Assembly: GCA_025594325.1 (NCBI GenBank)
Contig: JANHCV010000008.1
Coordinates: forward strand, 930,001 to 994,000
Length of the DNA stretch: 64,000 nt
DNA from: Blastocladiella emersonii ATCC 22665
Taxonomy: Eukaryota > Fungi > Blastocladiomycota
Reading direction: 5' to 3'
A model generated the notes under the pieces. That model was not told the DNA's origin, made no database searches, and was given only the letters and a program-made list of their open reading frames with translations. Of this stretch, positions 89 to 64,000 are shown in pieces; position 1 is the first letter of the stretch; the number at the start of each line of letters is the position of its first letter. The translations under genes were made by a program, and so were the position numbers.

Positions 89-1318
89 ATGAAGACTCCA
101 TGCAACTTGAATGAAAATCGGTTACCGACACACGGTGACCTTGTCCGCGTTCCGGGCCTCCCACTTGCCGCGGCCGCCGAGCGAGACGCTGGGTGCTGCG
201 AGGACCAGCAAAAGAGACTTTTGCGCGTCATGGAGCTGCGTCTTCAGGTTATAAGAACCACTCTTGCTATTAGACTTGATCGATCTCCCGCTCCGTCACA
301 TTCGGCGACCGCTGCCGCCGCTGAAATCGGATCACTATTGTCTCAGCTCGCGAGTTTGACGGAGCCGCAACAGATTGTTGCTCGTTCCTTCAACGAGCCC
401 GCTCCTGTCCTGGCTCCCGCCGGCTCGGACACGCCTCGTCTCGACCCGGCGCATGGTCATTGCAAACCCGAGCCCGAGTTTGGAGCAGCTCGTTCTCAAG
501 GCCCAGCTCATACAGGTCCGACCACGACTTACTCAACAGGGACCTTGAACTCGCCCAGCAGCCGTACCTCCCTTTGTTCCTTCGACGACCACCTTCGCTT
601 CAGACTCAAGGAGTCTGGCCCCAACGTGCCGCTCACGGTCTTGCTGGCGCATGCTTACCCAAACGTCCACCGTGCCCTGTATCGCAGGTATGCTGTCTTC
701 TTGCGCATGACAGCAACCGACGACGAGGCGAAACAAATCTTCCTCGACGCTCTCAAGCCAATTGACGATCAGCTGTCGTGGATTAACCGCTGGCTCCGCA
801 TGAAGCCCCGGCCGAGCACTACCGTCGCCAAAGTCTTCTCGACCTATATCCTTGTCCTCCGCGAGCAGATTGTGACTGACGCCATCTTTCAAAGGTTGTG
901 GCACATGAAAAAGCTCTTTGCCGACAAGTTGTTCATGTCGCTCGGGTACATCCCGAAGACGTCGCTGGAGATGATCGCCGCGCCTGATTTGACTTTGTCT
1001 GAGATGGCCGCCGCACTTGGCAACGTTGTGTTCCCGGCGGTTCACTTGTCCGCACCGATGCGAGGCAGCGATGCGGTAACCCGCGGCGGCGACAGTATCG
1101 CCTGCATGTACTGCCGGCAGCTTTGCCAAGCAGTTAATATTGTCCGCTCTCACTCCACGCGCGAGTGCCAGGCACTACAGGACACTTGCTCCGTCGCCAC
1201 TGCAATCGTGAGCGCCGCGCGAAACATGGCCGTTCCAAGCCCTCCGCATTGCGCGGCCGCTTCGCTGAACCATGTCTTCCTCGCTACTGCGAAACAATGG
1301 GTCGTCGACGTGACCCGA
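89..1318 (+). pseudogene. Gag-like family member 1, 5' part, interrupted by TIR element A
   Basis: Leader LLRVMELRLQVI, core HRALYRRYAVFLR...WINRWLRMKP, knuckle CMYC-x12-HSTREC. After codon 410 (VVDVTR) the ORF-track translation runs into element A repeats. Confidence 0.85.
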
Positions 1319-1337
1319 CATCGCAAAACCTGCAGCA

Positions 1338-1745
1338 GCGGTTCGGGGCCCGATCGCGGCCGGATCGCGGCCAGAAAGCAGCATCTGGGCCGGATCTGTG
1401 ATATTATCCTGACGCGGACCGGATCTGGCTCAGACGCCGCGCGGGCGGCGCGAGCGGGGTCGGGGCAGCGTCTGGGCAGCGTTGGGGCGGTATCCGGCCC
1501 AGATCCGGCCCTGATCGTGCCGTGATCCTGCCCTGATCTCGCCCAGGTCCGGGACAGAGGCTGCCGTGATGCCGCCGCGAAGTGCGCACCGATCGTGTCA
1601 CTATCCCGCTCGCATCGTGGCCGGATCCGGGCACACGTCGCAGTCAGATCCTGGCCGTATCGTCGCCGGATCCGGGCCATGTCACGCTCAGATCCTGGCC
1701 GTATCGTCGCCGGATCCAGGCCATATCGCGCTCAGATCCTGACCC
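1338..1745. repeat. Left subterminal repeats of element A (CCGGATC / CAGATCCGG)
   Basis: Many direct and inverted copies of GCCGGATC(T/C)GG and CAGATCC(T/G)G. Confidence 0.85.
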
Positions 1746-1900
1746 AGTCGGGGAGTCATCCGCAGCATTCGGGTATATATATATACAATATCATCATATC
1801 GGAACACGCTTGGGCGGCCGGCCGGCCGGCCTGCCCGCTCGCCCGCCCCCCCCCCCCCCCCCACGGTGCAACAGCGCGTGCGCGCGCGCGCGCCCTTGGC

Positions 1901-4497
1901 CTACTTCTTGGCCTTGGTCTTCGTTCTGCGAGGCACCGAGATGGCGAACGCCGCGAGCGTCGCCGCGCGCTTGGCGCTGGGCTTGCGCACGCGCGTCGAC
2001 TTGGCCCAGGTCGCAGGCGTTGTGGGAGGCGCGGGTGGCGCGTTCTCGACGTTGTTGGTCGGGTCCGTCTCCTGCGTGACTTGGGCATCGGTCCACGCCG
2101 ACTCGTTGTCCTTGGCGCGCTCGTTGTCCTCAATGACGCCACCCTCGGACGCCGCCGACTGGCGCAGCTTGGCCTCAGTCTCGCCGTCGACCACGCCCGC
2201 TGGATCTTGAGCAGCAGCCGCAGCATCGATGGCCGCGGCCGGCGAGGTGAGCCCGTGTGCTGCGCCGACTTGGGGCTCGACCACGGACCCGCTGGTCGGT
2301 GTCGCACTGGCACCAACACCTGCAGCAGCGGAGCGATGGGCTGGGAGGTGGGGGCGATGGCATGAGCGTCAGCGTTGGTCACCCGGACGCGGAGACAGCA
2401 GCGAAGGGAAGGGAGCATACGACAAGGCCGCTGCTGCAGTGGCGGAGGTGGTGGTGGCCGAGGTGGTGGCGGGGTCAGCGAACGTGGACGACGAAGGGGA
2501 CTGGCGTCGCTCTCGTCGCCCTTGTCATCGTTGTTGGCGTCAGCGTCGGCACGAGGGAGCGGGGACGAGGGGAAGGGCGCGGTCGTAGTCTCGACAGGCA
2601 CGAGCGAGGGCGCGCTGGTGGCAAGCGGGACTGCGGCCGAGGTCAAGGCCGACATGGTGAGCGAGGCCGAGCCGCTACCGTTGCCGCTGCGCGCAAGCAG
2701 CTCGAAGATACCGGGGTCGAGGCCGTTGTGGGCAGCGAGGTGAAGAGGCGACGCCGGGTTGCCGGGGTTGATGAGCATTGATGACGTGTTGCCCAACGGC
2801 ATCTCGACCGCGTAGCCCGAGTTGGAGAAGGGCATGGCGCCGGCGGGTACCGATGACGAGGCCGAGGCCGCTGCTGGTGCCCCGGCGATGGCAAGGCCGG
2901 ACGCGGGCGTGGCAGTGCTCGGCGGCGGGGCAGTGAACCACGCAAAGCCCGTACTGTACCCACGTTGGGCACACGTCTCGCGGAACAGCACCGAGAAGCC
3001 GGTCACCTTCTTGGTAAAGTTGGGTTCCGCCACGACCTTGCGGAGCTTGGTGAGGTTGGATTGCCGGTCCGACTGGTTGCGGAAGTCACCCCACCCCTTC
3101 GCGGGCGACAGGGCCGAGCCCAGCTAGGCAGCGCGCGCGCGCGGGGGTGAGCAGGCCGCAGAAAGAAAGCGGCGGTGACGGCGGAGGCGCAACGTATCAC
3201 AGCGAGAAGTAGAGCGAGGAAGCATTGGGCGCGGTTGACCTTGAGCACGGCCCCGTCCAGTTCCTGCAGCACCAGCACAGCGATGGATCCAAAGGATACA
3301 TTCGCTATGAGGGCAAGGTTGGAGGGGGAGGGGAGGGGCGAATGAGGGGTACAAGTTGTGTCGAGGGATGGGCAGACGCACGCAACGTACAGTTCACGGA
3401 CAACAGGAGGACGCTGTCGAGCAGCACCTCAAGGATCGTGTTTGGGTTGCCGGCCGCGTCAAAGAGCACGTTGTTGGTCCACGCAGGCTTGAGGACGCCC
3501 ATGTTGCCGGCCTTGAAGGCGGCGTGCGCCGTGTCCCAGGTCCCCGAGGCGATCGAGGCGTTGTTGACCAGCTTCTGCCTGATGAACTTGAGGACCAGCG
3601 TGAAGAGGTTGGAGCGAGCACAGGCGAACTCGTCCTTCAGGTTGGCGAACTCAAGCTATACACAGGCAGGCAGCAGAGTCAGTGCACCCGGCGCAACTCG
3701 CGGTTGGCCGTGGACCGTACATGGGCGCTTGGCCACTCGTTCTCAAGATCCGACAGGTCGAAGCGGGTCATGTACGGCGTGACGAAGGCCGAGTAGACCT
3801 TGGCGATCATGGTGCCATCAATTGTACGCAATCGAAGCTGTGCCCACCCGTTGGTGGGTGCGACTGCGGGCGCCAATGATGGTGTGAAAGGGGTGAGCGG
3901 GGCGAGAGGGGTGAGCGGGGCGAGAGGGGCGAGACTAGCGACGGGCGCAGATGGCGGAACAGTCAAGGGCGCAGAGGAGGGAGGAGCGGCGGGCAAGACG
4001 GGCCCGCAGGCAAATGGGTTGTGCTTCAAGCGGCGCCGCCACTTGCGCGGAGGCTTGCTGCCGTCGTTGGGCTGTGGGGCCGTTGCTGCCACCGCCGGAG
4101 AGGCAGCAACAGCGGCGGCGGCAGCAGGCGAGCAGGCGGGCGGCGCGCGAGTGGTGGAGCTGAGGAAAAAGGGCAAGGAGGGGTCGGGAGCAGGGGCGAA
4201 CGTCATCAACCGGTCCGTGGCGGGGGTACGCGCGGTGGCGGCGGGAAGAGACACGATGGGGAGAGGGGCAGCCTGCGCAAACGAGGTTGGGTCCGGCGGC
4301 GGGAACGGGAACTGCTGCTGGTGCTGCTGCTGCTGATGATGATGAGGATGATGATGCTGCTGCTGCTGATACTGCGGCATGGACCGCTGCTGCCGGAACT
4401 GCATGATCATCTGGATCTCGTCCGCCGTCATGTTGAGTGGCGGCTTGGCGGGCGCCGAGCCAGACAACGGGCTGGGCGCGGGTTGGTGCGACGCCAT
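1901..4497 (-). CDS. Multi-exon accessory gene of element A (polyQ/H, P/A/S-rich, basic C-terminus)
   Basis: MASHQP start at 4497. Exon frames correspond to ORFs 3679-4818, 3305-3502, 1756-3033 and 1901-2284, with a GTATGC...CAG intron near 2420-2312. Ends in basic RRTKTKAKK*. Exon boundaries are approximate. Confidence 0.55.
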
Positions 4498-4895
4498 GAC
4501 GGGCGACGCTCGGGACGCGAGATGGCGGTGACGGTGGCGGTGGAGGGCGGGTGGGTCGGATGCCAGCAGGTCGAGGGCGGCGGGTGTCTTGCGGGAGCAG
4601 AAGCGACCGAGGCCGAGCAGGCGCAAAGTCAAGAGAGGGGAGGGAGAGCGGGAGCGGGAGCGGGCGGGGCGGGGCGAGGGGGCGCCCCCTCTTTGCCTGC
4701 CTCTTCGCCGCCGCTGTGCAGCAGGCTGTGCAGCACGCCGCCGAACGCGCAAACGCGCCAACGCGCCAACGCGCCAATCATGTGCTCGGCGCGTCGCTGC
4801 CTCGCCGCTGCGCCGCAATCTCTCCCGCGCGCGCGCACGCCAACGCTGGGCCGCCCACCCTCACTGACTTTGCCCTTGTACTCGCGCATGTGTAG

Positions 4896-7442
4896 CGGGC
4901 GTCCGATGCGAGTCGCACCCGGTGACGTCTACAAGACGTTCATGCGGCTGCTGCAGGTGCTCGGCGACCTCCCTGAGCTCTCAATCATGACGCTCACCAA
5001 GCAGGGCATCGTCTGCCCGCATTGCCCGACCGAGGTCGCGCAGTTTCTCAAACGCATGCTCATCTTCGGGTCCTACAACATCGAGGAGATCCGCGCCAAG
5101 CGCGTCGACCCGCCGTCATGGGCCTGAGCAAGGCCCAGCTCAAGGCGCTGGCCAAAACTCTCGGGTACCACCTGCTCAAGGTGCGCTGGCTCTCTCCATG
5201 CCCACTGCGCTTTGGCGCCGCCCATGTCTCACTCACCGACCATTTTGCCCCCACACGAACGACGTGTAGAGCGGCTTCAAGGAGTGGCCCAGCGTCAACA
5301 TCTTCAAGTGTCTCGCTGTCGACCTGCTGCACCAGCTCGATATCGGCGCGTTTGGCCGCTACCTGTGGTCGGCGCTCAAGGCCATTGTCAAGAAGCGCGT
5401 GACGCACCCGCCGAGCCTCGAGCAGCGCATCAGCATGACGCCCGCCTTCTCGAGCAACCCGCTGCGCGCCGGCGCCATCATGACGCGTGACAAGCTCGCC
5501 GGGCACGAGTGGCGGTGCCTTTACCGCGTACGTGTGTTTCTCCGTGCTTGGGTAGACTCGCTGCTGGCTGGCTCCCTTCCAATGCTTACTCATCGTGTTT
5601 GCGTCGCTTTGCCTGTAGGTGATTGTGCCGCACCTGATCGGCCTGTTTCGCGAGAAGGAGCTCAACGACCGCGTCCTGCACCTGTTCAGCAGCTTCGCGA
5701 CCGTGGCCACGCTCGCGTCCTCGCCGACCCTCACCAACTCGGCGCTGGAGCTGATTGGACGGTACCTCGACGTCTTCTTCGAGCACCTCGTGCTGTTCTT
5801 TGAGGACGCCGGTGTCGACCTCCCCGACGCCCTCGTGTTTCATATGATGAACCACATCCCGGGCTCGGCACGCCGTTTCGGCGCGCCGGCGGCGTCCAGC
5901 ACCGAGACCACAATCGAGCTCCAGCACAAGGTGTACGCGACAGCACCAACGAAGCGCACCAACAGCCAGCAGTCGCTCAAGATTTTGGCGTCGCTCAACA
6001 TTGCTGCACGCGACGCCCTGATCGCGCAGTTCTCCTACATGCGCGTCTACCACCCCGACCTCATCTCGCTCGACAAGGTCGACCCGACGCTCGCGCCCCT
6101 CGACCGGGCACTGGACGGCGCGCGGGCTCGAGTGGCCGCCGCTTGTGCCTCCACGCCCGCGACGACCTTTGCCCCTGCGCCCGCCGCCCCAGCACCCGCA
6201 ACGACCTTTGCCCCTGCGCCCGCCGCCCAAGCACCCGCAACGACCTTTGCCGCCGCCACCGCTGCCCCCGCGCCCACCCGAGCACCCACAACGACCTTTG
6301 CTGCCGCCACTGCTGCCCCCGCGCCCGCCGCTGCAGGCACCATCCGGTGTGTCGACAACATGGACATCGACATTGCCACGGACGAGGGCCGCGTCTACGC
6401 TCGCCTCTACGGCAGCCCGGAGCTCATTGCCGAGGTCAATGCCATGTCGGCGGCCACAGGCGCTGTGGGCAACGGCGCGACGACTGCAGGCGCTGGCGCG
6501 CCGACGGCCGCTACTGACGCTGCTGCTGAACCACAGCCCGCCGTCAGCTGCGTCGAGTTGCAGTACGAGGAGCGCCGCATCACGCTCAGTGTCGTTCCCT
6601 CGCTGCTGCGCGGGTCCCGCCGCGGCGTCACGCTCGACTGGCTCGAGAACAAGTTCCCAAACCTCCTGCGCGGCCTCACCAAGGCCATGGCCAAGCACGT
6701 CCTGCTCGGCATCGAGTACGTACTCCCGCATCACTGCCCTCTCTCGAAGTCATGCACTGACGCCACTCTCCTGTTCGCTCCCTGTCCTTTTCTGCCACCC
6801 AGCAACCGCGACGCCAACGCTGCGCTTCGTCCCAAGGACCTTACCGATGCCGCCGGCCGCGTGTCGCAGGTCCGCGGGTTCCAGTGCATGGAGATCCATC
6901 GCACGAGCGACCTCGACCGCCAGCCGATCGTCGAGATCCTCAAGGCCCGCGTCACCGAGTCCCATGGTCGCCTCGTCAACGACTTTTTTGTGGTACGTTT
7001 AACCTCGCCTTGTTATCTTCCTGCCGCTTTACACCACTCGTTACTGATCGCCTCCCCCTGGCGACAAACCCAGGCTTGGCGCGGCAACCAGGGCGGGCTC
7101 AACATCATGGAGCCCATCCTCTTCCTCGACTTTGCCATCAAGGGCTTTGACGACCGCTTCCAGGTCGCCGTCGGTCGCTGGTTCTCGCGGTTCAAGCCCA
7201 ACAGCAACACCATGCTCGCCCGCGACGCCATCACTCACCTGATCCAGGTGCGCCGCGAGGACGCCCTTGCCGTCGTACCCGTTCCCGCCATCGTCGGCCC
7301 TGTCCATCTCGTGCCGACGTTCCTCAAGCACCTCGTCAACGGGAAGCCCAAGAAGAAGCCGTACTACCACCTTAATTGGTTCATCGGCCGCGAGCAGTTC
7401 TTCCAGGAGTCTGACACGGCCTTCAACTCGATCCTGCGCTGA
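4896..7442 (+). pseudogene. Plavaka-like (CACTA-related) transposase, 5'-deleted and frameshifted
   Basis: Motifs GDLPE...CPHC, VDLLHQLDIGAFGRYL, LEQRISMTPAF and C-terminal GPVHLVPTF...YYHLNWF. Introns at about 5181-5269, 5528-5618 and 6993-7073. Frameshift near 5115. It begins at a splice acceptor (4895) with no recognisable upstream exons. Confidence 0.8.
6155..6330 (+). repeat. In-frame 39-bp-type repeat (TTFAPAPAAPAPA) inside the transposase
   Basis: Four copies of ACGACCTTTGC-initiated units. Confidence 0.85.
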
Positions 7443-8339
7443 GCAACGCTCGCCCACCATCCCCACCCCGCCGCGCTCGCCCCTCCTCTCCACCACGTCT
7501 GCAGCCGCCATGGGCTAGTCCGGCTCGGCTTCATTGCATTCTTTGCCTCACCCGAGTCCGTCGGTCGCGCACGGCTGGTCGCACACGGCTGCAACTTCAC
7601 GCGCGGTCCCGACGGTCGCTGGCCCACCACCATCTCCGCCGACGCCGGTTCTCGCTCGCCCGCGGCTCCGCCGACGCCGGTTCTCGCTCGCCCGCGGCTC
7701 CGTGGCGGCGGTCGCATTGGCTGCGCGCGCCGCGACCTATGGCCCGCACTCCGCCTACTCGTTTTCGCGGGTCGACAGGCATCATCGACAGCGCTGAGCC
7801 GCCCGACAAGCGTGCCGCCGCGCGCGACCGTGCCTCGGCGGCTCGCCGCGCCTTGGCGTTCGTCGAGATCTCTCGCGCGCGCGTCTTGGGCCCGCCGCGC
7901 AGAAGACGGTGGCGGTGAAGCCGTCGCCGCCGGATCGTTCCGACACGCGCCACCTCGCTCAAGACCCGGCGCGGGTCAAGTCGCCGCCGTCCTCGCGCGC
8001 CGGACCTCGCGCTGCCGCCGCCGCGGACCGTGCCACCGCAGCGGCCGTGTGGCCGGCCGGGCCGACTCGCGGCCATCGCATCAGCTCAGCAGCCACCGCT
8101 ACGCACGGTGGCCGCCGCCGCCGCGGTGGTCGCTGCTGCCGCGTCCCCACGCTGTCCACCAGTCCCTGGTGGGCGGGTATGGCGTCGCCCGCGGCGGGCA
8201 TCGCGACCACGTTGCGCAGCGACCACTCTCGCTCGCCCTCGCCCCGCGGATCGACCCATAGCAATCAATACATGCATTTGATACTTGACACCGCGTCCCA
8301 CCGTCCCGCCGCCGCGGCTCGCGGCCATGGCAGCTGCAG

Positions 8340-8553
8340 CTCGCGGCCAAGTCCCCCGTCTGGGCCGGATCTGGGCCCGGCAACCAGATCTGGCCCGGAT
8401 CTGAGCCAGACGGCTCATCTGGGCCGGATCCCGCCCCAACACCCCAGCCCCTCCGCGCGCGCCCACCCCGCCGCCGGCGTCTGAGCCGGATCCGGCCCAG
8501 AAGCGCAGTCTGGCTCAGATCCGGGCCAGAGCGGTGCTGCAGGTTTTGCGATG
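8340..8553. repeat. Right subterminal repeats of element A
   Basis: GGGCCGGATCTG / CAGATCTGG / CTGAGCCGGATCC units mirroring the left end. Confidence 0.85.
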
Positions 8554-8702
8554 GAGCGGGAATCCCAAAGGGCACGTCCCAGCGGAAAGCTGTCGAAATC
8601 AAGTCGGGGCGGATGGTCGCCACGGCGGTCTTGAAGTTGCCCAGCGCTGATTTCGAGCGGGTTTTTCAGGGCATCTGGATCGAAATTGCGGCGGTCTGGT
8701 AG
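8554..8702 (+). pseudogene. Gag-like family member 1, 3' part
   Basis: Rejoining across the GA TSD gives ...VTR-AGIPKGTSQRKAVEIKSGRMVATAVLKLPSADFERVFQGIWIEIAAVW*, matching paralogue ends such as RIPRGT...RERVLRVVWVEI. Confidence 0.85.
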
Positions 8703-9076: not shown

Positions 9077-10745
9077 ATGACACTCACTCACTATAGACGG
9101 ACTACAGACTTAATGCAACGAACCATGACATCGACTCCCGACCTGTCGGTGGCATCTGGCCTGGCGTCGGCCCTTGCCGACGACGTGGAGGTCTTCTCGA
9201 ACTCCCGCCCCGAGGGTTCACTGAATCCCGTCGCTCTCAATAAGTCTATGTTGCTCGGATCCATCAACATCCGGCTGCAGCTGAAGCGTGCGGCGCTGCA
9301 CGATCGCGCGCTGCAACCCACGCATGTCTCGTTTGCGCCGCCTGCCGACCTTTTCTTCTCATCTTTGCTACCTGCTGCACACGAAGAGCTTGATTCACCG
9401 CCTGTCGATGTCGATCTCCCATCCACGCCAACGTCGGCTCTCGGTCCCGCGTTCCGCGATGCGCCGATGACCAACGAGCCCAGAGCGCCGTGCACCAAGC
9501 TTGTGGCGCCCATCGTGACGATGCTGAAGCAGGAACGTTCTTCGTCCTCTAAATCGCTTTCTTCCAGCTCACCTCCGGCCACCGTCGCCAAGCTGCGCCA
9601 CTCCCTCAGCGCCACGGACCCGCAGCTCTTTCTTCGCTTCAACAAACTTGCACCCGCTTTTCGTATCACGTCCAAGCACTCATCCTCGAAGAGCTTCCAT
9701 GACCCGCATGCCTATCTCGCTGCTCTCCGCGTTGCAATCCCCGAAGCAAAGACGCTGGCCGCCCTTCTCCTGAATCTGTGGACCAAGGTCGATCTTCTTT
9801 TCTACTGCACCTATGCCGTCCTACTCATCGAATCAACACCCGATGCCCAGGCTGAGCGTCTCTTCATTGGCATCGCTGATCAGACCTGGAATCCCGAGTG
9901 GATCGCACGCCGGCTCGCGCTGCAGCCTCGTTCTCAATTGCGCAGTGACATCTCGGCCTACCGTTTGATCTTTCACAACCTCCTCAGCTTAGTCGTAGAG
10001 GTGACTCCGGAGCTGTTGCATTCATGCCACATCAAGCGTGTCTTCACCCTGCTCATCGGTCACTGGCTCAAGTGGAAACCGACGAACGTGGACCCGCTCG
10101 TCCATGACACGGCTGCTTCGCTTGCTGATGTCGTAGAGGTGTACACTCGCCTCACCTTGCGTGGTTCCAAGTTTGCTTCCGGGAAGGACGGCTCGGCGGC
10201 CGCTGCTCAACGTCTGACCCCGCGCCCAACCACCACTACTGCATCAAGCCAGCCATTGCGGGTGTGCGCGCGGCACCTGGACGACCCGGCTTCTCATTCC
10301 GCTTCGTCATGCTCTTGTCACGCTCCCGCTCGCGGTCGCCCGCTCACCACATGCCTCACGAGCACCCTGAGGGGTGCGACTTGTGCTCCCCGCATCCCGG
10401 CTACCCGGTCCCCTCGGCCCACCTTTCCGAGGAATGCCCGCTCCTAAATGACCAGCGGGAGCTCGCGCACCGTCTGCTGTTCGTGGTGCGCACCTCCGAG
10501 ATCGAAGATCTGCCGTTACCGTCGTCCGCGAACTACTACCCTACCTGCTCGAGATGACGACCACGTGGCTGCGGCAAATTGTCTACGCCAAGATTTTGCC
10601 CGGAACGCCCCGGGACGATGCATGCAAGCTGAAGCGGTGCCGCAGCACGTTCGCGATGCTTCTCGCGACACCGCATTCGCGCCGCCGCGAGCGCGTGCTG
10701 CTGGCCATGTGGAGCGAGGTGGCTAAGCTCGTCGAGGCGGCGTGA
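9077..10745 (+). pseudogene. Gag-like family member, two frameshifts
   Basis: Core YCTYAVLL...WNPEWIARRLALQP in frame 9077. SRSRSRSP and knuckle CDLC-x11-HLSEEC in frame 10264. C-terminus KILPGTP...RERVLLAMWSEV in frame 10554. Confidence 0.8.
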
Positions 10746-11016: not shown

Positions 11017-12699
11017 ATGAACACTAGATGCAACGTGCCCGGGGAGAGTAGAACGGAAAGCGTGGTTAGTCTTGGCTCGCCAGGACGGGTTGGCGAAAAT
11101 GCCCACGATGTCCCGGCTGCGCGAGAGCAGCTTCCCGCGCCCCACCGGCGAGCTTTGGAAGTTCGCTTGTCTCTCGTCCATCTTGCACTTTCTGCTCGAC
11201 TTGGGGCTGTTACTCCCGGAAATGTTATTGCCCAGTCCCAATTTATGATGGCGGAGCTGTGCGAAATTGACCAGTCCCGCGCCACGCTCGAAACTTGCGT
11301 ACCCGAATCACCTGAAGGCGATGAAGATACGGACTCGAACGACCTTGACATCGAATCGTGTGCTTCGTCGTCGTCAGCTCTCGCTGGATTAGACGAACAT
11401 CGTCCAATCGTGGATACCGCCGACTCGTTCCAGCCCAAGTGTGAATCGACTTCTGGTTTGCCCGAGACCGCTACCACCAAGCTTGATGATACTGCGGCGA
11501 GCGAGTGTCCTACCTCGCCCGACCATGATCCTGCGGCAAACGATCCGCTTTCGTCGCCCGGGTCACTCGAACCAGGAGAAATCGAGGACGACCCTGCGAG
11601 CTCCAGCGCAACTCTTACGGACGCTACCGGCTGCACAATCTCTACGCAACCATTGCTGTCGCTCAGCCCCTACTTGACCCATCAACTGGCTCACCCGAGC
11701 CCTGCTGCTTCGACCATGCCCGTTCGGCTTGTTACCCATCGAGGCGCTGCTTACGATCCCCAACTTTACGAAGCGCTCCGAATTCGAGGCCCAGACCTAT
11801 GGCTTACGAGTGACATGGATCGCGAAACCATCTCGCGCGTGGGTGCCGAATTTCTTGACCAGCTGCGCGAGTTTGCTCCCAGCTTCAGTCTTGCGAGCTT
11901 GCTGCTTACTGCAGCACCTTTGGTGCCTCGAGGAATCAACTGCGTCCTTTCTGTATATCTTCGTCGAGACATGTATGATGCGGAGGCTCGTGAGCTCTTC
12001 ATGAACGTGCTCGATCCCGAATGGAAGCGGGACTGGGTCCGCCGGTGGCTCGCACTTGTTCCTCGGTCCGGCGAATCCATTCCAACCTTCTACCGCACGT
12101 TTATCGCGCTCCTCGGCGAGGAGATCAGCCTCAGGGAAGAACCCAATATGCTTTCTTGGCGCCAGTTCAAGCACGTGTTTGGAGCCAAGTTGTACACGAG
12201 CCTCGGACTGTTGGCCAAGCCCGTCATGGAGCTTGTTTCAGACAATCGTGCAACTATCGGGAAAATGGCCGACAATCTCTCGCATGTTAAAGCGCCGCTT
12301 CATCAAGCTGGCACTCCGTCACCCGTGGATGCGTGTCACTTTTGCCAGCGGATCCCTTACATCCACCTCGCGCTCGCCTCGCACTCGCTGTCCATGTGTC
12401 CGCAGATTCGAAAAATGCAAGTCCATGCTCGTGTCGTCGCGAGCGCGGTCGCTGGCCTCGCGCTTGCGATCCCGAACACTTACAGCAGTAGCACGATGAC
12501 CAATCCTCAGGCTGAGCAGCGGACCTTAGACCTGGTCGAACGACTCCACGCGGCGCCCATTCCGTATGACTCGCCGCGCCAGACCAGAATCGCCGTGAAG
12601 CACGCTCGAGTGCTCGTCCGGATATTGGTGGGGCTCCCGCACAGGGGCAGGTGGCGCGCGCTGCACGACTTTTGGGTGCACTTGGAGCCGCTGCTATAG
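11017..12699 (+). CDS. Gag-like capsid / zinc-knuckle protein (560 aa, subfamily II)
   Basis: Intact ORF. WVRRWLALVPRSGESIPTFYRTF, FKHVFGAKL, CHFC-x12-HSLSMC, ends LHDFWVHL. Confidence 0.8.
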   Translation: MNTRCNVPGESRTESVVSLGSPGRVGENAHDVPAAREQLPAPHRRALEVRLSLVHLALSARLGAVTPGNVIAQSQFMMAELCEIDQSRATLETCVPESPEGDEDTDSNDLDIESCASSSSALAGLDEHRPIVDTADSFQPKCESTSGLPETATTKLDDTAASECPTSPDHDPAANDPLSSPGSLEPGEIEDDPASSSATLTDATGCTISTQPLLSLSPYLTHQLAHPSPAASTMPVRLVTHRGAAYDPQLYEALRIRGPDLWLTSDMDRETISRVGAEFLDQLREFAPSFSLASLLLTAAPLVPRGINCVLSVYLRRDMYDAEARELFMNVLDPEWKRDWVRRWLALVPRSGESIPTFYRTFIALLGEEISLREEPNMLSWRQFKHVFGAKLYTSLGLLAKPVMELVSDNRATIGKMADNLSHVKAPLHQAGTPSPVDACHFCQRIPYIHLALASHSLSMCPQIRKMQVHARVVASAVAGLALAIPNTYSSSTMTNPQAEQRTLDLVERLHAAPIPYDSPRQTRIAVKHARVLVRILVGLPHRGRWRALHDFWVHLEPLL

Positions 12700-18531: not shown

Positions 18532-19065
18532 TTACTCAAGCTCAACATAGCGGCTCTCGCTCGACCCAGCACCACCTGTACGCGGGAGCGGGAACGGCGC
18601 GCCGCGCTCGACAAACATGCGCTCGAGCTTCTCTGCCTCGCGATCCGCGTCCGCCGGCGACCCAAACGTCATTTTCGCGAACGTGCGGAACATGTCGAGG
18701 TTGGAGCTGACCATGGCCTCGTACTCGGCCATCTTCGTCAGCGACGTGCGGTACTTGGCCATGTCGGCCGCCGTCGCGCGCTGCGGGCGAATCGAGCCCA
18801 TCTCCTGGCGCATGCGCTGGACGTCGCTCAGCATCGCCTCGAGATTCGAAATCACGTTGAGCACGTCGGCAGGGCTCCCGCTGTGCTTGAAACGCTCGGC
18901 CAAGGATAGGAACTCCTTGGTCCGCCGCCCCAGGTCACCGTGGGCGGCTTCGGCAGCGGAAATCGTCGCGTGGATCTGCGGCGCCGTGGGAGCCGAGGCC
19001 CCGGCGGCCGACCAGCGCTTGGTGCACTTCTTGGCGCTGGATTCGTTCTTTGGGTCGAATCCCAT
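18532..19065 (-). CDS. Small helical/coiled-coil protein of unknown function (177 aa)
   Basis: Clean ORF with ACTTGATGCAAC 12 nt upstream of the ATG. Has an adjacent paralogue. Confidence 0.65.
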   Translation of the reverse strand: MGFDPKNESSAKKCTKRWSAAGASAPTAPQIHATISAAEAAHGDLGRRTKEFLSLAERFKHSGSPADVLNVISNLEAMLSDVQRMRQEMGSIRPQRATAADMAKYRTSLTKMAEYEAMVSSNLDMFRTFAKMTFGSPADADREAEKLERMFVERGAPFPLPRTGGAGSSESRYVELE

Positions 19066-25388: not shown

Positions 25389-25421
<33 letters not shown>

Positions 25422-42928: not shown

Positions 42929-43213
42929 GGCGCGACCTTGACTGGATGGAAATATACACGCGAGGCCATCTTATGCACACTTGCCACACGTCCCCTTTCC
43001 TCGATTGAGCCTCTTACTTGCGCGCAGTTGCAATGACGGCGACTCGAGAGATCGCGAGCCCCGCGCCGCTCATCTCCACGTGGCGCACCGAGGGGTCAAG
43101 TGGCGTCAGGTTTCCCCTGTGACGTCTGCTCGAGATCCAAACGTTCGCCCTCCCTGATCGCCCCGTATCGCATGAAGCAGATGAAATTCTACCCGGCGAC
43201 TTGATGCAATACG

Positions 43214-44716: not shown

Positions 44717-44930
44717 AATAAAACTTGTACGGAGTCCACAACGACTCTATGACGCGGCACGTTTGCAACGTTTGACAATACCCGCCAAGCCCTCATCGAT
44801 TTCTCATTCGTGGAGCGGGTGCGAGACAAAAATCGTGCGAGACATCACGTGAGTTTCCCGCGCGAGCATTTCGAGGCTTTTGCGATCGCGGCGCGCGTTC
44901 GACGCCACCTTCCGCGTACTTTGAATTCAA

Positions 44931-49250: not shown

Positions 49251-49545
49251 CGGTTCAAGTGACCTGGCACAAGGCGCACCCAGTTTTGATAACGTGTGAC
49301 TGGCACTGTCGCGAGCAATGAATCTTTCTTGTAGCCCAACCCGTGCAATTATTCGCTCCATACTTTCAAAGCGTTACCGCGTGGCGCGTCGTGTGATCGA
49401 AGATTGATCCGAGGTCACGCGATGCTGTTTGACCCTTGAAGGCACGGCGGCGCTGACCGAAGCCACCCCAGCTCCCCGCTACCATGTAAGCTTTGAATGA
49501 ATCGCCATGAACACTCCATGCAACCGAAACAGCGACCTAGCGTAA

Positions 49546-51724
49546 ATGCAATGCGTTGGTCGTGACAGCAAAGTCGAGCTTGAGCGACTTCACCGTCGAG
49601 CGATGAATTTACGGTTGTCGCTCATCCGCCTTGGTCTAACCACTCGCCTTCGCACGCTTCCTCCCGGTAATGCCAACCTTATTGCTCAGTCTCAATCAAT
49701 TTTCTTGGAGCTCCACAAAATGGCCCAACAATGTGCTGCGCTCGAGGCGCAGGCTCAACCCGTGACTCCCGCCCAGCAAGAATCCCGTGCCTTTCCGAAC
49801 GCTTCCTCGCCAACTTCACCGACTGCAAGCCTTCACGTACATCCTGCGACGTATGACCGTGTTCCCTTACCCAGTGCTGCTTCTCCACCTGCATTTCTGG
49901 CTCCCATCTTGCCATCTCCGCCAACGGATGCGTCAAACACGTCCGAAACCGTAGAATTGAATGATTTATCCGCGGCGCACTCACTGGATTCCAATTTGTC
50001 GCCAGTTCGGTCGCCGTGCACCAACTCGCCTGGATCGGAATTGGCGGATCGCTCAGCTGCTGTTGATTTTGCGACCGCCCAACCCTCTCCAATTAACGAT
50101 CGGGCGTCTGATCCCGAGCATGGTTCCATTCTTGATGCCAATCCTTCGCCCGTGCGCGGTTCCGAGCTCGCGCGTCAGATCATTACCACTTCTCTTCAAT
50201 CATCGGCTACAGGCTTGATCGAGCTGCCCACGGCTATGCTGGCCCGGACCTTGCTGCAAGCCGAGATTGATTCCCTTTCAGACGAGGACGCGGTTGACGA
50301 GCCTCGGATTACGACTGGGAATATCGGCCCAACGGCCCTCGGGTCTTCGAATGCCAACGTCATTGCCATTCTACGCCGTGCGCACATTCTTGCGCTCCTT
50401 GGCGTTATCAACCCGAGCGGTGAGGAGTCGCCCGCGCACCTGTACGGCGCGTTCGTGTACTCGCGCATCGAGATGCTACTCGAAAACCCCGAGCTGCTCG
50501 CCAAGTTCCTCGCGCGGATCCGCGCCATCGGCCCGCATGACGGCGGCGTCCTCGCTGAGGCGATGCAGCGCGCGTGCACCGTCGCCAACTGCCGCGCGTG
50601 GATGCGGCGGTACGCGAACCCGACCCGCGTTCGCTCCACATCGTCGCTCGCGCTCGAGGCCGAGGACCTCACGCCGATCGTGCTGTTCCTCGCGTGCGTC
50701 GCCGACAACCTCGAGGCGGCGCTCGGGTGCGCGGACGTGTTCGTGCACGGCGAGTCGACCAAGATCGAGATCATTGCGGCGCTCATCCACACGACGAGCC
50801 ACTCCCTCATGATGCACGCGCGCGAGTGGTACCGCGCGAGCGTGTACGGCGACGTGGACGACGACGCCATCCCGTCGTGGCTCAAGGCGAACGGGCCCGA
50901 GGACCCGCTCTGGTGCCGCTTTCTCGTCTACGCCAAGTTCACGCCGCTGCTCATGTACATGCGCCGCGATCCCGCCCGCACGCACGCGTCGCCCGCGGCT
51001 AACGGCGAGGATCTCGCTGGCGTGTACCGCGTCCTGCAGGGCGCGCTGCGGCCGCCCGCCGCGTCAGGCACCGTTGGCGACGCGCTCGTCGACCAGATCA
51101 CGATCCCCGCCACCATCTTTGAGAACTTTGGCCGCGGGATCCCGATGCTCGGCCTGCGCGTGCCCGCCATGCGCGAGGAGATGGTGGACGGGGCGCTGCA
51201 GATGATCGATGCGACGCCGTTCGCCGCGCTCAAGATCGTGACCGAGATCGCGCTCGTCGCCTCCGCCTCGCCCGCGCACCTCAAGTACACGCAGCCCGGC
51301 ACCGCCGGCAAGACGACGATCGTGTTCCTCAACGCCGACGGTACGCCCTCGCCGCGCGCTCGCGCTCGTTGACCCGCCGCGCGCCGCGAGCATACGCTGA
51401 CACGCGCGAGCCCCACGTGTAGCCGAGACGCGGAGCGGCGCCGTGCAGCGCGTCGTCGACCACCCGCACGACGATACCACGTCTGCCCTTTTTGCCGCTG
51501 CTCGAGCGCCGCTGGACGATTCGGCTGCTGAGCGGGCAATCAACGCTCGCGTTGTGAAGCACCGCAAGAGCTGGCCGCCGACCAAGGTCGCGCAGCACTG
51601 GATCAAGTCCGCCGTTGCAACCCAGACGGTCAAGAAGGCAGTCGCCGCGATACCTGCCGCGGAAGGCCCGCGCAACTGGACCGAGTTTCGCGAGAACCTC
51701 GAGCTTTTGGCTATTCCACCATAA
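49546..51724 (+). CDS. Chimeric gene: Gag-family leader fused to an unrelated two-exon domain
   Basis: LHRRAMNLRLSLIRLGL leader plus S/P linker, then no capsid or knuckle motifs. Intron 51341-51422 (GTACGC...GCTGAC...TAG) joins ORF 51443-51724 in frame. An in-frame MNTPCN...TAA precedes it at 49507-49545. Confidence 0.65.
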
Positions 51725-59322: not shown

Positions 59323-60840
59323 GTGCATGCACTCTCGAACCCTCACCATCCCCATGATATGACGATGCAGACTTCTTGCAATGTATTTAGCACCATGGAA
59401 GACAATCTTATGCAGGCGATGAGCGTGCGCTTGTCGCTTATCCACACTGGGCTTGCGGCCCGCCTGCAATCAGCTCCGCGCAACACCGCCCCTGCCCGCT
59501 TATCGTCCACTGATTCTGAGCGCAAAGCTCAAGGTCCAGCATACGAAGTGCTTTCAGATCGACCACTATGCATCCAGGCGTCAGCCTCACTTGTGGTCTT
59601 GCAGCGCCCGATTCCGCATCAAGATCTGCAGACCCCAGCTTTGTCCGACTCGCTTGCTGTCGAGGCTTCGCACACAATCAAAACACGTACTTTTTCCGTT
59701 TCCAACGACTTACATCAAGGCTTTGAGCAAGGCGAGCTCACGGATGCAGACTCGGACGCTTGCGACAAGCCACCGTCCGCTCAAAGGAAAAAACAATCTC
59801 TCCCTCGCGCTCTCCGGTCTCCACGCGCGCAGGTATCAGAGAAAACCTTCAATTCCGCTGCTCAAGGTCACAGTGCAGCTTATGAATCCGCGCTTTGCGA
59901 GTCGCTCCGCCGAGAGGGCGTGGTTCTTCAAGTGACGAGCGCGATGGACACTCGCGCCGTTCTCTGCGCTGGAATAGCCTTTGTAGACAAGCTGCGCCGC
60001 TTCAAGCCGAACTTGGAACTTGTGACCCTGCTACTCAGCGCGTTCAAGTGCGTGCCGCGGCCCGTGTACCACATCTACGCGGTCTTCCTGCGCAAGGGCA
60101 TGCCGAATGCGATGGCGGAGCAAGTCTTCTTTGACGCCCTAGACCCCGCCTGGAAGCGAGTCTGGGTTGAACGGTGGCTCAGGCTCCAGCCAAAGCGTGG
60201 CGAATCCGTCTGGAACTTTTACTCTGCGTTCCGCGCCATCTTGTCCGAGGCGATGGACTTGAACCGCGACCCCGACGTTCTTGCCTCGCGCCAGCTAAAG
60301 CACATTTTCGCCGAGCGTGTCTACTCGAGCCTTAGCAACGCGCCCGATTCGGTGCGAACTCTCATCGCTGACGAACACGCGACACTCGAAGACTTGGCTT
60401 CCACGTTCGCCAACTGCACAGTGGCTCGCGTTCCTTTGACAAAGCGCGGGATCGACGCCGTCTGTAGCTTCTGCTCGGAGGTCCCGTACCTCCGCAACAC
60501 TAGCACCACGCATTCCACTGAGACGTGCGGGCAGTTTGGCCACATGCAAGTCCACGCACGCGTCGTGCTCGCCGCGCTTGCGGCAACTGGGCTAAGGGTC
60601 CCGGCCATGCCACCACGCGCGGAATTCTCAGCCAGCTGGGCCTTGAACTTGACTGCGCGAACGCTCGAGGCGTTTCGCGAGGCGGCGGACACCGCGCGAT
60701 TGTCAGTTGAGCGCATGACGGCTGTCACCCACGCACGCGACTTGCTCCATGTTTTGATATCGCTTGAGATCCCTCAGTCTAGGAAGCTGATTGCAATGCA
60801 CGGACTTTGGATTCACGTCGTTACGTACAAGCGCCCCTAG
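59323..60840 (+). CDS. Gag-like capsid / zinc-knuckle protein (505 aa, subfamily II)
   Basis: LMQAMSVRLSLI, WVERWLRLQPKRGESVWNFYSAFRAIL (the best Gag-like signature in the window), ATLEDLA, CSFC-x12-HSTETC. Confidence 0.85.
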   Translation: MHALSNPHHPHDMTMQTSCNVFSTMEDNLMQAMSVRLSLIHTGLAARLQSAPRNTAPARLSSTDSERKAQGPAYEVLSDRPLCIQASASLVVLQRPIPHQDLQTPALSDSLAVEASHTIKTRTFSVSNDLHQGFEQGELTDADSDACDKPPSAQRKKQSLPRALRSPRAQVSEKTFNSAAQGHSAAYESALCESLRREGVVLQVTSAMDTRAVLCAGIAFVDKLRRFKPNLELVTLLLSAFKCVPRPVYHIYAVFLRKGMPNAMAEQVFFDALDPAWKRVWVERWLRLQPKRGESVWNFYSAFRAILSEAMDLNRDPDVLASRQLKHIFAERVYSSLSNAPDSVRTLIADEHATLEDLASTFANCTVARVPLTKRGIDAVCSFCSEVPYLRNTSTTHSTETCGQFGHMQVHARVVLAALAATGLRVPAMPPRAEFSASWALNLTARTLEAFREAADTARLSVERMTAVTHARDLLHVLISLEIPQSRKLIAMHGLWIHVVTYKRP

Positions 60841-61147
60841 CCTCAACGATTACTCAGGCGTGCTACCTGCTGCATGTGATCAAGGAAAACAGTATTCATC
60901 TATGCGGATCGTTCGAATGCAATGAAATACATAGTTAATCTGAGTCGAGTCCAATCGCCGCGAGGGATCGCGAGGCGACTACCCGTCCATTGAATGAGTG
61001 GCACGGCCTGGGCCCTGACGCTCGCGCAGCGCCACACCACGTGAGGATCAGCCACTGGATCCCACCGCAAGCTTTGGTTGCGTTCGTGCGTTCGGACTGC
61101 GGCCACAGCTGGTGTCCTCGCTCTTGAACCCTCGCCACACCCACGAC

Positions 61148-62609
61148 ATGACCGTGGAGACTTCTTGCAATGTATTCAGCACCACGGGAACCGGACACTT
61201 ACAGGCCATGAACGCGCGCCTGTCGCTCATACACCTTGCGCAACTCGACTGCTTGCATCGACGCGACTGATCAGCCTCCGCTGATGGGCTCTGTGCTCCG
61301 GGAAGTGGTGCGGGACTGTTTAGCAAGGCTGGATCGACCGCTTTGCGCGAAATCCTCGACTCCACTTGAGGGCTTACTCCCAGCTCCATTTCTGACGCCT
61401 CGAACACCAACACCGCTCGATCACACCATCAATGCAGCTTCTCAATAGACTGAATATCATGCGATCCGGGCGCCGAACGAGCGATCTGAGCCCCTCGAGC
61501 CGGGCGAAATCGATGAATCGACAGCTTCCCCTCGAACACCTGTCCAACCCGAACAGCCCTCGACCGCTGGCAAAATTCAGCTTTCACGTGAAGCTGCCAT
61601 GCAGCGGAAATCTGACCACGCGTCCCAATATCGCGGTGCTGCGTTTGACTCGGCGCTCTGCAAGTCGCTTCGCAAAAACGGGCCAGCGCTTTGTGTGAAC
61701 AGGGTAATGGACGCATACGGCTTACGACGAGCTGGTTCCGCCTTCGTTGACCGGCTTCGTCACTTTGCGCCCAACTTTGACCTCCCGAGCTTTCAGCTGA
61801 GCGCGTTAAATTGCGTGTCGCGGTCCGTGTACCACGTCTACTCGGTCGTTCTGCGCGAGGGCATGTCCGACGATACGGCCAAGCAAGTTTTTCTCAACGC
61901 CTTAGACCCGACCTGGAAGCGGGACAGGGTTGAGCGGTGGATAGCGCTCGGCCCACGGCCCGGCGAGCTCGTGTGGGGCTTTTATGTCGCCTTCTGCGCC
62001 ATGCTGGGCGAGGAACTCGATCTTGTCCAGGAGCCTCGTCGCATTGACGCATGCCAGTTCAAGCGGATCTTCGTGGAGCGGGTACACGCCAAAATCAGCT
62101 ATGCGCCCAACTCGATCCGATACCTCGTCTACAACAAGCGCACGTCGCTCGAGAATCTGGCCGCCGCGATCTCGGAGTGCGCAGGCGAGCGCGACATGCA
62201 GGCAGCACGAAAGAGGCTAGCCGGGTGCGGGTTCTGCTTGAGAGTCCCGTACCTCCTCCTAAAGTGCACGAAGCACCCTCTCGAAGCATGCATGCAGCTG
62301 GACAAAGTGAGCCTCCACTCACGCGTCATCCTTGACGCGCTCGACGAGACTAGGATCGCTCTTCCTCGCGCGGCGCTTGGCGCGGTGCAATCGGCCAGCT
62401 GGGCCCAAGATTTGACTGTTCACTTACTCGAGCAGTTCCGTGACGCGGCGCTTCCCAAGAATATGGCTGCCCGCGACGTGATGGCTGTCAGGCATTCTCG
62501 CGAGTTGCTTCGCGCCCTGACCTCAGCTGAACTCTTGCCAGCGAGGAAAGGGGTCGTGATGTATAACCTGCGGATTCGCGTAGAATCGATATGGCGTCCA
62601 CGAGTGTAG
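61148..62609 (+). pseudogene. Tandem duplicate of 59323 with a frameshifted leader
   Basis: MTVETSCNVFSTTGTGHLQAMNARLSLIH stops at about 61268. The core is intact in ORF 61599-62609 (RVERWIALGPRPGELVWGFY, CGFC-x12-HPLEAC). The upstream DNA resembles 59230-59390. Confidence 0.8.
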
Positions 62610-62920
62610 CGGTTTGTGGCCGTTTCTTCTCCGCCGCATGAGTTTCCTGAACAAGTTCGTGAGCGTTCCTCATTCAGATATCGAATAAAAACCTAACGCC
62701 GTAAAGAATGACCTGGCGCGTCAGTTACAGCGGTGAGACCAGCGCGGTGGTCATGTCCACGTGCTGCATGTGATGCGGGTGGGCCTTGCCAGGGGTGGCC
62801 TTGTGCCAGGGGTTTGGCTTCCCACGGACACGGCCGGCCCCGAGGCGCCCAACTCGGCCGCCCTCGCTCTCCATCTCCTCGCGCTATCACAGATGAACTG
62901 CCCATGTAACTCGATGCAAG

Positions 62921-64000
62921 ATGGAACTTGATGCATCTAAATGCGATCTTTATGCTTCCGCGGACTCGCTCGTTAAGTCCGCCCTGGACGAAGGTCGGTT
63001 GCCCGACGACCGCAGCTTGGTCGAGCTCCGTTCCTCAACCTTGCTCAAGGCTATGAACTTGCGAATTGAGTTGATCCGCGCCGCCCTTGCGTCACGCTGC
63101 CCGCTATCCACTGGGGAGTCGGTGTCTGACCTGCAAGCCCGTGCACAAACCGCTGCCGCGTTGCTTCGCGAGATCGAAGCGCTCGGTGTCTCGATCGACG
63201 CACGGCTCTCGGCAACGAAATGTGATTCGAGCCGGCGACCAGAACCAGCGCCGCGTGCCGGCCGCTCCGCTACTACTGCGCAGTGCATTCCCAGCCCGCG
63301 AACGTCCCCTGAGCGACGCGCACCCGTCTCTTCTCCCACTTGCGACCTCGAAGCCCGCGATGAACGCGACGCGTTGTATTTTCGCTACCGCAGCACCGAC
63401 ATTCCAGAATCGCGGATCTGCTGGAACGCCGAACTTTTTGTTAAACGCCTGCGCGCCGTGGCGCCCGACGCGCCGCTTGCCGCGTTGCTGTTCGCGTCGC
63501 GGTCCCGCTTGCCGCCTGACTTGTACACGGTCCTCCTTGCGCTGTTGCGCCCTAGCATGCCCGACACCGAGGCCGAGCACGCGTTCCTCCGTGCCTCGCT
63601 ACCCGACTGGAACTGCCGGTGGGTCCGCGAGTGGCTCACTCTTGGGCCACGGTCGCGCAACGGGATCAGCGCGTTCCAGGCCGACTTCCGCTTCTGGCTC
63701 CGCCGGGTGACGCAGATCGTACCCGCGGTCGAGCGCGAGTTCCACCTCAAGATGCTGTTTATGCGGCGAATTGAGGAACGGCTCGCGTGGACCGCCGAGT
63801 CGGTGCGCCGCATCGTCGACGACGAGAGCGGCTCGATCGTCGATATTGTCGTAGAGTACAACCGGCTTCTGCGTGTGGAGCGGGGCGAGGAGACCGAGCC
63901 ACGTCCCCTCGGCTTGCGCGCACCGCCTGTTCCTCCAGCCCCGCAACCTCGGGCTTCGCCACCTTCACCACGACCGCGCCCACGTTCGAGTTCAAGATCG
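62921..64000 (+). CDS. Gag-like protein, close paralogue of 31328, runs off the window end
   Basis: My translation from ATG 62921 reads MELDASKCDLYASADSLVKSAL...LLKAMNLRIELI...WVREWLTLGPRSRNGISAFQADF and stays open to 64000, so it is absent from the ORF track. Confidence 0.85.
   Translation, partial: MELDASKCDLYASADSLVKSALDEGRLPDDRSLVELRSSTLLKAMNLRIELIRAALASRCPLSTGESVSDLQARAQTAAALLREIEALGVSIDARLSATKCDSSRRPEPAPRAGRSATTAQCIPSPRTSPERRAPVSSPTCDLEARDERDALYFRYRSTDIPESRICWNAELFVKRLRAVAPDAPLAALLFASRSRLPPDLYTVLLALLRPSMPDTEAEHAFLRASLPDWNCRWVREWLTLGPRSRNGISAFQADFRFWLRRVTQIVPAVEREFHLKMLFMRRIEERLAWTAESVRRIVDDESGSIVDIVVEYNRLLRVERGEETEPRPLGLRAPPVPPAPQPRASPPSPRPRPRSSSRS

Follow-up and report, generated by a model that had tools for sequence, protein, structure and literature searches.

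What are the intronless genes that recur in tandem along a 64,000-nt stretch of the genome of Blastocladiella emersonii ATCC 22665 (Blastocladiomycota), and are they domesticated capsid genes, as a first-pass annotation of this stretch proposed? The stretch, hereafter the window, lies on contig JANHCV010000008.1 (contig 8; ~930-994 kb) of assembly GCA_025594325.1. That assembly was generated from PacBio HiFi reads, polished with Illumina data, and comprises 34.27 Mb in 21 contigs with an ab initio annotation; expressed sequence tags also exist (PMC9730499). The window proves to be a slice of a very large family of fast-diverging genes that is restricted to B. emersonii. The encoded proteins constitute an undescribed and largely unannotated family, and their helical core may well be descended from the capsid of a retroelement.

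The family was surveyed in the window and in nine further loci (~250 kb in total), each of which was scanned in all six frames with a hidden Markov model (HMM). The nine loci were picked for holding a member, and the counts given below describe copy density within them, not between them. In the window, the HMM scan (E down to 1e-167) and tblastn among the open reading frames (ORFs; E down to 1e-143) identified 14 large paralogues and four fragments, and all 16 positions at which the first-pass annotation had placed a family gene were confirmed as members. Ten of the copies each form a single intact ORF, another three contain frame changes, and one runs past the window end. As each intact copy is one uninterrupted ORF, the description of these genes as intronless also holds, and only one piece, a fragment, departs from the + strand, as had been noted at the outset. 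The copies, together with one ORF that shares a single module with them, are as follows.

89-1525, +: intact copy of 478 aa, divergent and on a long branch (HMM E 2.8e-100; alignment A1)
8496-8699, +: orphan fragment, C-terminal module (HMM E 1.9e-6; tblastn)
9077-10736, +: probably decaying copy (tblastn high-scoring segment pairs in frames 2, 1 and 3; HMM pieces)
10473-10736, +: piece counted among the four fragments
11017-12699, +: intact copy of 560 aa, 59323 subfamily, putative zinc motif CX2C-X12-H-X4-C
20144-21910, +: intact copy of 588 aa, with an Arg/Ser (RS)-rich disordered linker preceding the core
22413-24269, +: intact copy with an RS-rich linker; probable ATG at 22500, later than the listed start
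27379-29067, +: intact copy of 562 aa
29552-31081, +: copy with two frame changes, core in ORF 29833-30870 (tblastn high-scoring segment pairs in frames 2, 1 and 2)
31328-33184, +: intact copy of 618 aa
33513-33923, -: fragment with zinc motif and C-terminal module (HMM E 3.3e-10)
36019-36345, +: C-terminal fragment, 20144 subfamily (tblastn E 1e-14)
41444-42928, +: intact copy of 494 aa
43214-44716, +: intact copy of 500 aa
44931-46535, +: intact copy of 534 aa, very divergent, found by HMM and missed by BLAST
59323-60840, +: intact copy; probable ATG at 59359, later than the listed start
61112-62609, +: copy whose frame changes between 61234 and 61332, ORF 61599-62609
62906-64000, +: copy cut by the window end
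49546-51372, +: 608-aa ORF with an N-terminal helix module in common with the family and a different body in the remainder (tblastn E 3.6e-8; HMM E 6.6e-6)

Head-to-tail copies on the same strand are separated by as little as 214-311 bp, and the coordinates of the two gaps originally singled out as unusually small, 285 bp (42928 to 43214) and 214 bp (44716 to 44931), check out. Frame changes are regarded as probable real decay because the assembly was built from HiFi data. In the 9077-10736 copy, for example, ORF 9077-10447 encodes the N-terminus and the capsid (CA)-like core, with the zinc motif and C-terminal module continuing in two other frames. Duplication of larger units is also evident: the 62906 copy is 67-70% identical to 31328, and the two-gene block formed by 61112 and 62906 matches that formed by 29552 and 31328 at a spacing of ~31.6 kb. 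Since ORF 49546-51372 carries the family's N-terminal module on an unrelated body, this module appears to have been shuffled between gene families.

Far more copies are found outside the window. The family numbers at least 50 copies over ~1.1 Mb of one 1.8-Mb contig, plus three on other contigs, and the surveyed loci of contig 8 contain the following.

186-207 kb (L005): 3 copies
334-354 kb (L009): 1-2 copies
554-576 kb (L001): 5 copies
851-872 kb (L006): 4 copies
930-994 kb (the window): 14 large copies and 4 fragments
1154-1177 kb (L004): 8 copies
1277-1302 kb (L008, ~25 kb): ~12 copies, nearly wall to wall

Two divergent copies are situated amid ABC-transporter genes on contig 6, and one solitary copy on contig 1 is flanked by a pyridine-nucleotide oxidoreductase gene and an IML1/DEPDC5 gene. 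In an exhaustive search of 1.84 billion protein cluster representatives with a core-profile HMM, 25 matches were obtained, of which 23 are genuine, and all 23 are B. emersonii ATCC 22665 proteins designated "hypothetical protein". The other two matches were rejected, as their scores were only the sums of weak repeat matches; they are P0022, a repeat protein of 990 aa, and P0025, a tetratricopeptide repeat protein. A word-index homologue search with a 505-aa family protein returned no matches and missed even the paralogues, having probably been swamped by low-complexity words. Most of the 23 GenBank entries are truncated gene models. For instance, only the last 313 aa of ORF 27379-29067 are annotated (protein P0002), and other public models fuse two to three neighbouring copies, such as L004 10001-13458 (P0001) and L008 10001-15141 (P0004). 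The family is badly under-annotated in GenBank.

In a maximum-likelihood tree, the copies group by location, with an L004 clade of seven, an L001 clade of four and several subfamilies of the window, and this grouping argues for local tandem duplication. Local tandem duplication and segmental duplication, in a birth-and-death process, account for the growth of the family. Pairs of paralogues are 20-87% identical at the amino acid level, and synonymous divergence (dS) was at least 0.34 for each pair tested. Nine window pairs analyzed by the NG86 method had dS values of 0.49-1.8 and ratios of nonsynonymous to synonymous divergence (dN/dS) of 0.29-0.44. The closest pair consists of 27379-29067 and its nearest relative, L006 16604-18256, which lies ~87 kb away and shares 87% aa identity over the core; for this pair, the part comprising core, zinc motif and C-terminus gave a dN/dS of 0.25-0.26 at a dS of 0.34-0.37. 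The N-terminal half of the same pair gave a dS of ~0.98, and the contrast points to a mosaic history or to gene conversion, unless the disordered part is simply poorly aligned. Across paralogues, dN/dS is 0.25-0.45, so that the copies are being maintained as ORFs under moderate purifying selection; codon site models for positive selection would be unreliable at these divergences.

The proteins follow a common plan (alignments A1-A4). An N-terminus of the form M-x-(x)-T-P-C-N is followed ~30 residues on by an amphipathic helix, LLxxMxLRLxLIxxxLxxR, and then by a disordered linker that is rich in Arg/Ser repeats in the clade of 20144, 22413 and 27379. Next comes a helical core of ~180 aa, whose most conserved residues are W97, R100, W101, G109, V112, F115, Y116, F119, L123, K142 (kept in 27 of 28 core sequences) and F145 (25 of 28). 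The motif by which the family was initially recognized, W..RW(L)xLxPxxG..V..FY..F.A.L ... IK..FA.R/K, is indeed common to the members. A poorly predicted, flexible spacer of ~15 aa leads from the core to a putative zinc motif, CX2C-X10-27-H-X4-C, and a helical C-terminal module of ~90 aa completes the protein; in the 31328 copy, an RS-repeat insertion of ~100 aa (DNA repeats 32362-32740) separates the CA-like core from the zinc motif. The first-pass annotation had described a CCHC knuckle, and this is correct insofar as the C, C, H and C ligands are conserved (each occurs in 20-21 of the 21 sequences that extend over this motif). The knuckle is not of the retroviral type, however, because the spacing from C to H differs (X10-27 vs X4). 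A CX2CX4HX4C knuckle occurs in no family copy, its sole match in six-frame translations of the ~250 kb being a spurious 33-aa piece outside the family, and no Pfam match to zf-CCHC (PF00098) was obtained with 10 full-length proteins (E<=1) or 28 cores (E<=10).

Structural models were generated with AlphaFold2 for the core, using 12 paralogues (predicted local distance difference test score [pLDDT] 84, predicted template-modeling score [pTM] 0.70; all-helical, with 11 helices before the spacer), and for the C-terminal lobe (C-lobe) alone, using 26 sequences (pLDDT 92, pTM 0.81), with the 59323 core as the reference sequence of both. As predicted, the layout consists of six helices, a strand-turn-helix motif, four more helices, the flexible spacer and the Cys/His motif. 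Gag polyproteins are organized as a CA N-terminal domain (NTD), a major homology region (MHR), a CA C-terminal domain (CTD), a spacer peptide (SP) and a nucleocapsid (NC), and the predicted layout of the family parallels, by analogy, this CA-NTD / MHR / CA-CTD / SP / NC order.

Three independent weak signals agree, if weakly, on a retroelement capsid. The first comes from a Foldseek comparison of the core with BFVD, a non-redundant viral structure library, where the best match was the coat protein of Lamium leaf distortion virus, a caulimovirus (E 0.036, prob 0.96), and ~15 of the top 30 matches were capsid-bearing proteins of caulimo-, badna-, tungro-, lenti-, delta- and epsilonretroviruses. 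Another is provided by the isolated C-lobe, for which Foldseek found six PDB matches at E<=10; the top match was the Ty1 capsid CTD (9rxw_A; 87/90 columns, template-modeling score [TM] 0.44, E 6.6, not significant), and the second and fourth were the HIV-1 CA CTD. Finally, residues 71-146 of P0001, corresponding to the RWLxxxPxPGETVxxFxxF region and thereby to the very motif that the first-pass annotation had picked out, match the Gag-derived Pfam family PNMA with an E of 0.02 (14.8 bits vs a cutoff of 25).

Set against these signals are several contrary observations. The search for Retrotrans_gag (PF03732), Arc and zf-CCHC in Pfam gave no match for any of the 28 core domains at E<=10, and ten full-length proteins matched no Pfam family, Gag or other, at E<=1. 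The lone PNMA match falls within the number of chance matches at E<0.3 that is expected for 28 queries. Sequence-profile searches of the PDB with alignments A1, A3 and A4 returned no capsid, only designed helical proteins and noise, and no Foldseek match reached E<=0.001 (E 0.036 to 9, TM 0.23-0.44). The whole-core Foldseek list against the PDB places 14-3-3 proteins level with HIV CA, with Rous sarcoma virus CA also near the top; its ranking therefore partly reflects generic helical similarity and library frequency, and it was set aside as uninformative by itself. In the MHR region the aromatics are conserved across the 28 cores, but the canonical residues are not (Q in 2/28, E in 10/28 and G in 20/28, with R out of register), and the spacing of the zinc motif is unlike that of the retroviral CX2CX4HX4C knuckle. 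Ty3 and Arc structures are absent from the listed PDB matches. Lastly, no homologue was found outside B. emersonii among the 1.84 billion representatives, a library whose coverage of close Blastocladiella relatives is uncertain. What emerges for the proposed Gag origin is a mixed picture, in which capsids of Ortervirales appear repeatedly as neighbours, topping both the BFVD and C-lobe lists obtained with the 59323 reference, and a sub-threshold PNMA match points weakly the same way, but in which no sequence or structure match is significant. The more specific assignment to the Ty3/Gypsy type is not supported, because it is the capsids of caulimovirids, retroviruses and Ty1, and not those of Ty3 or Arc, that come closest in structure. 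In our estimation, descent of the core from a capsid is rather better than an even bet.

The most serious competing explanation is that of an orphan, lineage-specific family unrelated to Gag, in which a helical domain and a zinc-binding motif originated within Blastocladiella, or diverged there until unrecognizable, and were amplified in a duplication-prone region; the resemblance to capsids would then be what bundles of many short helices generally have in common. This explanation is in keeping with the lack of any significant match to a known family, the equal scores of 14-3-3 proteins and HIV CA, the non-conserved MHR residues and the deviant zinc spacing, and the same region does amplify unrelated orphan families (12912-15200 with 15691-17923, and 18532-19065 with 19394-19822). 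It sits less comfortably with the agreement of BFVD (six virus genera), the C-lobe list (three of six matches being Ty1 or HIV CA-CTD) and PNMA on retroelement capsids, and with an order of core, spacer and zinc motif that fits Gag; we consider it a real but distinctly weaker possibility, unlikely on the whole. Alternatively, the genes could be the cargo or ORF1 of an unrecognized mobile element, whether Helitron-captured or non-autonomous, with the array arising from transposition. The region certainly bears traces of mobile DNA. Pfam matches among the 30 non-family window ORFs of at least 150 aa were limited to fragments of PIF1 helicase and a single weak match to a Plavaka transposase; PIF1-like, Helitron-type fragments occur in the window (38453-39244, -, and 47392-48582, +) and in two further loci (L003 and L004), and L005 holds a Herpes_ori_bp helicase gene. 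Moreover, a 99%-identical, 789-bp inverted repeat (arms 38463-39251 / 47445-48233), whose arms carry the PIF1-helicase-like ORF fragments, brackets the trio 41444-46535, and a common 5' motif stands ahead of each copy. The arms of that repeat are far younger than any duplication of the family. The copies themselves do not behave as mobile units: they share no flanking DNA past ~130 bp upstream, lack individual terminal repeats, are all old (dS at least 0.34, 20-87% aa identity), have their neighbours as mutual closest relatives, lie head to tail on one strand at spacings of 214-311 bp, and include solitary copies amid housekeeping genes on other contigs. Transposed cargo is accordingly a quite improbable source of the array.

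The remaining alternative, that a capsid gene of an unknown non-retroelement virus (e.g., a mycovirus) was endogenised and later amplified, could draw on the viral library that supplied the best structural neighbours and on the GC content of the cluster loci, which at 0.60-0.61 is below the 0.65 of an ordinary locus. Those neighbours, though, are specifically reverse-transcribing viruses, no other viral gene was found in ~250 kb, and the 1.84 billion representatives contained no viral or metagenomic homologue; this origin seems to us the most far-fetched of those considered. We therefore retain, with a slight inclination in its favour, the reading of an ancient and since diverged capsid domestication that was followed by massive expansion in one lineage. 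As to whether the copies are still linked to a retroelement, the view that no pol or LTR (long terminal repeat) lies between them has been borne out in the window and extended to the nine further loci, which together cover ~250 kb. The same 30 ORFs gave no Pfam match to reverse transcriptase, RNase H, integrase or protease; the window has no LTR-sized direct repeats and no per-copy terminal repeats; and no YxDD motif was present in six-frame translations of the window and nine loci. The hallmarks of an active transposable element are lacking, in that the closest pair has a dS of 0.34-0.57 and no terminal repeats and the copies are tandem and clustered by location. Because dS is at least 0.34 and the DNA similarity between paralogues stops ~90-130 bp upstream of the ATG, the family copies are host-resident genes and not recent mobile copies.

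Gene starts in the family carry a conserved DNA motif. This 12-mer, (A/C/G)ACTCNATGCAA, occurs at 10 sites in the window vs 0.73 expected by chance, and 9/10 are on the + strand.

Window: 94, 18135, 20158-20169, 22514, 27408, 36564, 41083 (-), 47147, 49512 and 62908
L004: 6058-16573
L005: 9478 and 19975
L006: 9421 and 16618

In L004, L005 and L006, the 12-mer is found at the start of almost every family copy or 100-300 bp upstream of it, and it is absent from L002. It codes for the T-P-C-N of the N-terminus in five family genes; elsewhere it falls outside the reading frame or in a short upstream ORF (uORF) just before the main ATG. One such uORF, MNTPCNRNSDLA and a stop codon, precedes 49546 and begins MNTPCN, and another, MNCPCNSMQDGT and a stop codon, precedes 62921. 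The 12-mer also lies ahead of the non-family ORFs 36558 and 49546, and beside PIF1-like fragments. Given that it sometimes codes for T-P-C-N and is sometimes out of frame or in a uORF, the 12-mer is, judging by its placement, conserved as DNA or RNA and not just as protein. The copies with ATGs at 9077, 11017, 20144, 22500, 27379 and 44931 share two further motifs roughly 90-120 nt before the start, namely GATATCA(T/C)GTGA, which resembles an E-box, and GACGCGT, which recalls the fungal MluI cell-cycle box. Taken with ACTCNATGCAA, these E-box-like and ACGCGT motifs hint at joint regulation of the copies.

Other sequences of the region have multiplied as well. A second orphan tandem family is represented by 12912-15200 (-, 762 aa) and a frameshifted paralogue, 15691-17923 (-), which are 42% identical, share the N-terminus DLPxExLExV and have no Pfam match. 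ORF 36558-37091 has an N-terminal motif similar to that of this family, with BLAST similarity that is not significant. There may be a third, small orphan family, comprising 18532-19065 (-, 177 aa) and 19394-19822 (-), paralogues at 32% identity; two annotated minus-strand genes of 177 aa in L006 (13770-14303 and 14603-15136) have been likened to the former by size alone. Further pairs with the bracketing repeat are found at 41071-41255 / 46975-47159 and at 38381-38443 / 49189-49251. The stretch 3200-7500 may be the remnant of a Plavaka/KDZ-type DNA transposon: it includes the weak Plavaka match (4021-5127, E 0.037), a long ORF (5619-7442) and a tandem repeat of 39-51 nt (6145-6324). Short tandem or palindromic repeats rich in GGATCCGG flank the first copies (1589-1743, 8389-8530, and 1416-1504 vs 8417-8498), and these may be satellite sequence or resemble miniature inverted-repeat transposable elements. 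A search of the window against Rfam gave no matches.

The most likely way in which such a family could operate may be envisioned as follows. The core would most probably have been inherited from an ancient Ortervirales-type capsid (Gag CA, with its N- and C-terminal lobes), the zinc motif would occupy the nucleocapsid position, and an old, heavily diverged Gag domestication would have been followed by massive expansion. Self-association of the proteins could then involve the capsid-like lobes together with the N-terminal helix, nucleic acid would be bound by the putative zinc motif and the RS or basic tracts, and the outcome would be either decoy subunits that poison the assembly of retroelement or virus particles, or RNA-binding assemblies. 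In its boldest form, the proposal is that of a "capsid nursery" occupying ~3% of the genome, in which dozens to hundreds of Gag-derived, self-assembling, nucleic acid-binding proteins, their genes tagged by ACTCNATGCAA (often in a uORF), would act in concert, serving as a diversified innate restriction bank against retroelements or viruses or forming particles that package their own tagged transcripts. This version is offered as speculation, and we would not expect it to hold in full.

Comparisons with known systems are instructive in this regard. The Gag-derived PNMA, RTL (SIRH) and Arc families of animals are, like the present one, pol-less, LTR-less, multi-gene and under purifying selection, and one B. 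emersonii member has its sub-threshold Pfam PNMA match over the equivalent region. A helical capsid domain of two lobes persists in them, followed in certain members by a zinc motif (PEG10 and some PNMA proteins); its counterpart here is a putative one. The animal families also give significant Gag HMM matches, comprise ~10-20 mostly dispersed genes and have orthologues in many species; the B. emersonii family, in contrast, belongs to a single species and numbers at least 50 copies within a 1.1-Mb tandem domain, with a different zinc motif and no significant HMM match. In yeast, the Ty1 capsid CTD is the best (though not significant) PDB neighbour of the isolated C-lobe (E 6.6), and Ty1 p22, a capsid fragment that blocks particle assembly, exemplifies the kind of mechanism proposed above; p22, however, is encoded within Ty1 itself, and the B. 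emersonii family is a separate host gene array. Coat proteins of the Caulimoviridae and the CA-NC portion of retroviral Gag have the same order of helical capsid, spacer and Cys/His zinc motif, but the family lacks three of their features: the CX2CX4HX4C knuckle, the conserved MHR and the linked pol. In vertebrates, the SCAN/KRAB zinc-finger genes pair a capsid-CTD-derived dimerisation module (SCAN) with zinc fingers and form large tandem clusters that evolve by birth-and-death, as does the present family, and are thought to track retroelements. SCAN proteins are nonetheless transcription factors with C2H2 finger arrays, and those of B. emersonii have one putative CCHC motif and a variable loop. 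Among fungi, the co-opted gag genes Crtg12-14 are all single-copy, confined to Dikarya and recognisably derived from Ty1/Copia or Bel-Pao (Wang & Han 2021, PMC8321522); these three genes are the sole instances of Gag co-option so far known in fungi. Both they and the B. emersonii family are fungal host genes, but Gag derivation is recognisable in Crtg12-14 only. A kingdom-wide screen for transposable element co-option in fungi, published in 2024, was conducted without Blastocladiomycota (PMC10799480), and nothing comparable to the present family has been described in the literature for this phylum.

Even if the link to capsids should fail, B. emersonii possesses an undescribed protein family that is for the most part missing or truncated in the public annotation, extends over ~1.1 Mb of a chromosome-scale contig and has a shared cis-element, and the region clearly exemplifies a duplication-prone "gene nursery". 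If the capsid origin is true, no known Gag-derived host gene family would come near this one in size, and it would be the first in an early-diverging fungus, and the "capsid nursery", were it also to prove true, would be the first large-scale capsid domestication outside of animals and plants and the largest anywhere. B. emersonii is a tractable zoosporic model, and with a capsid origin the question of why hosts keep and multiply capsid genes, be it for restriction, RNA transfer or another purpose, would become directly testable in this fungus.

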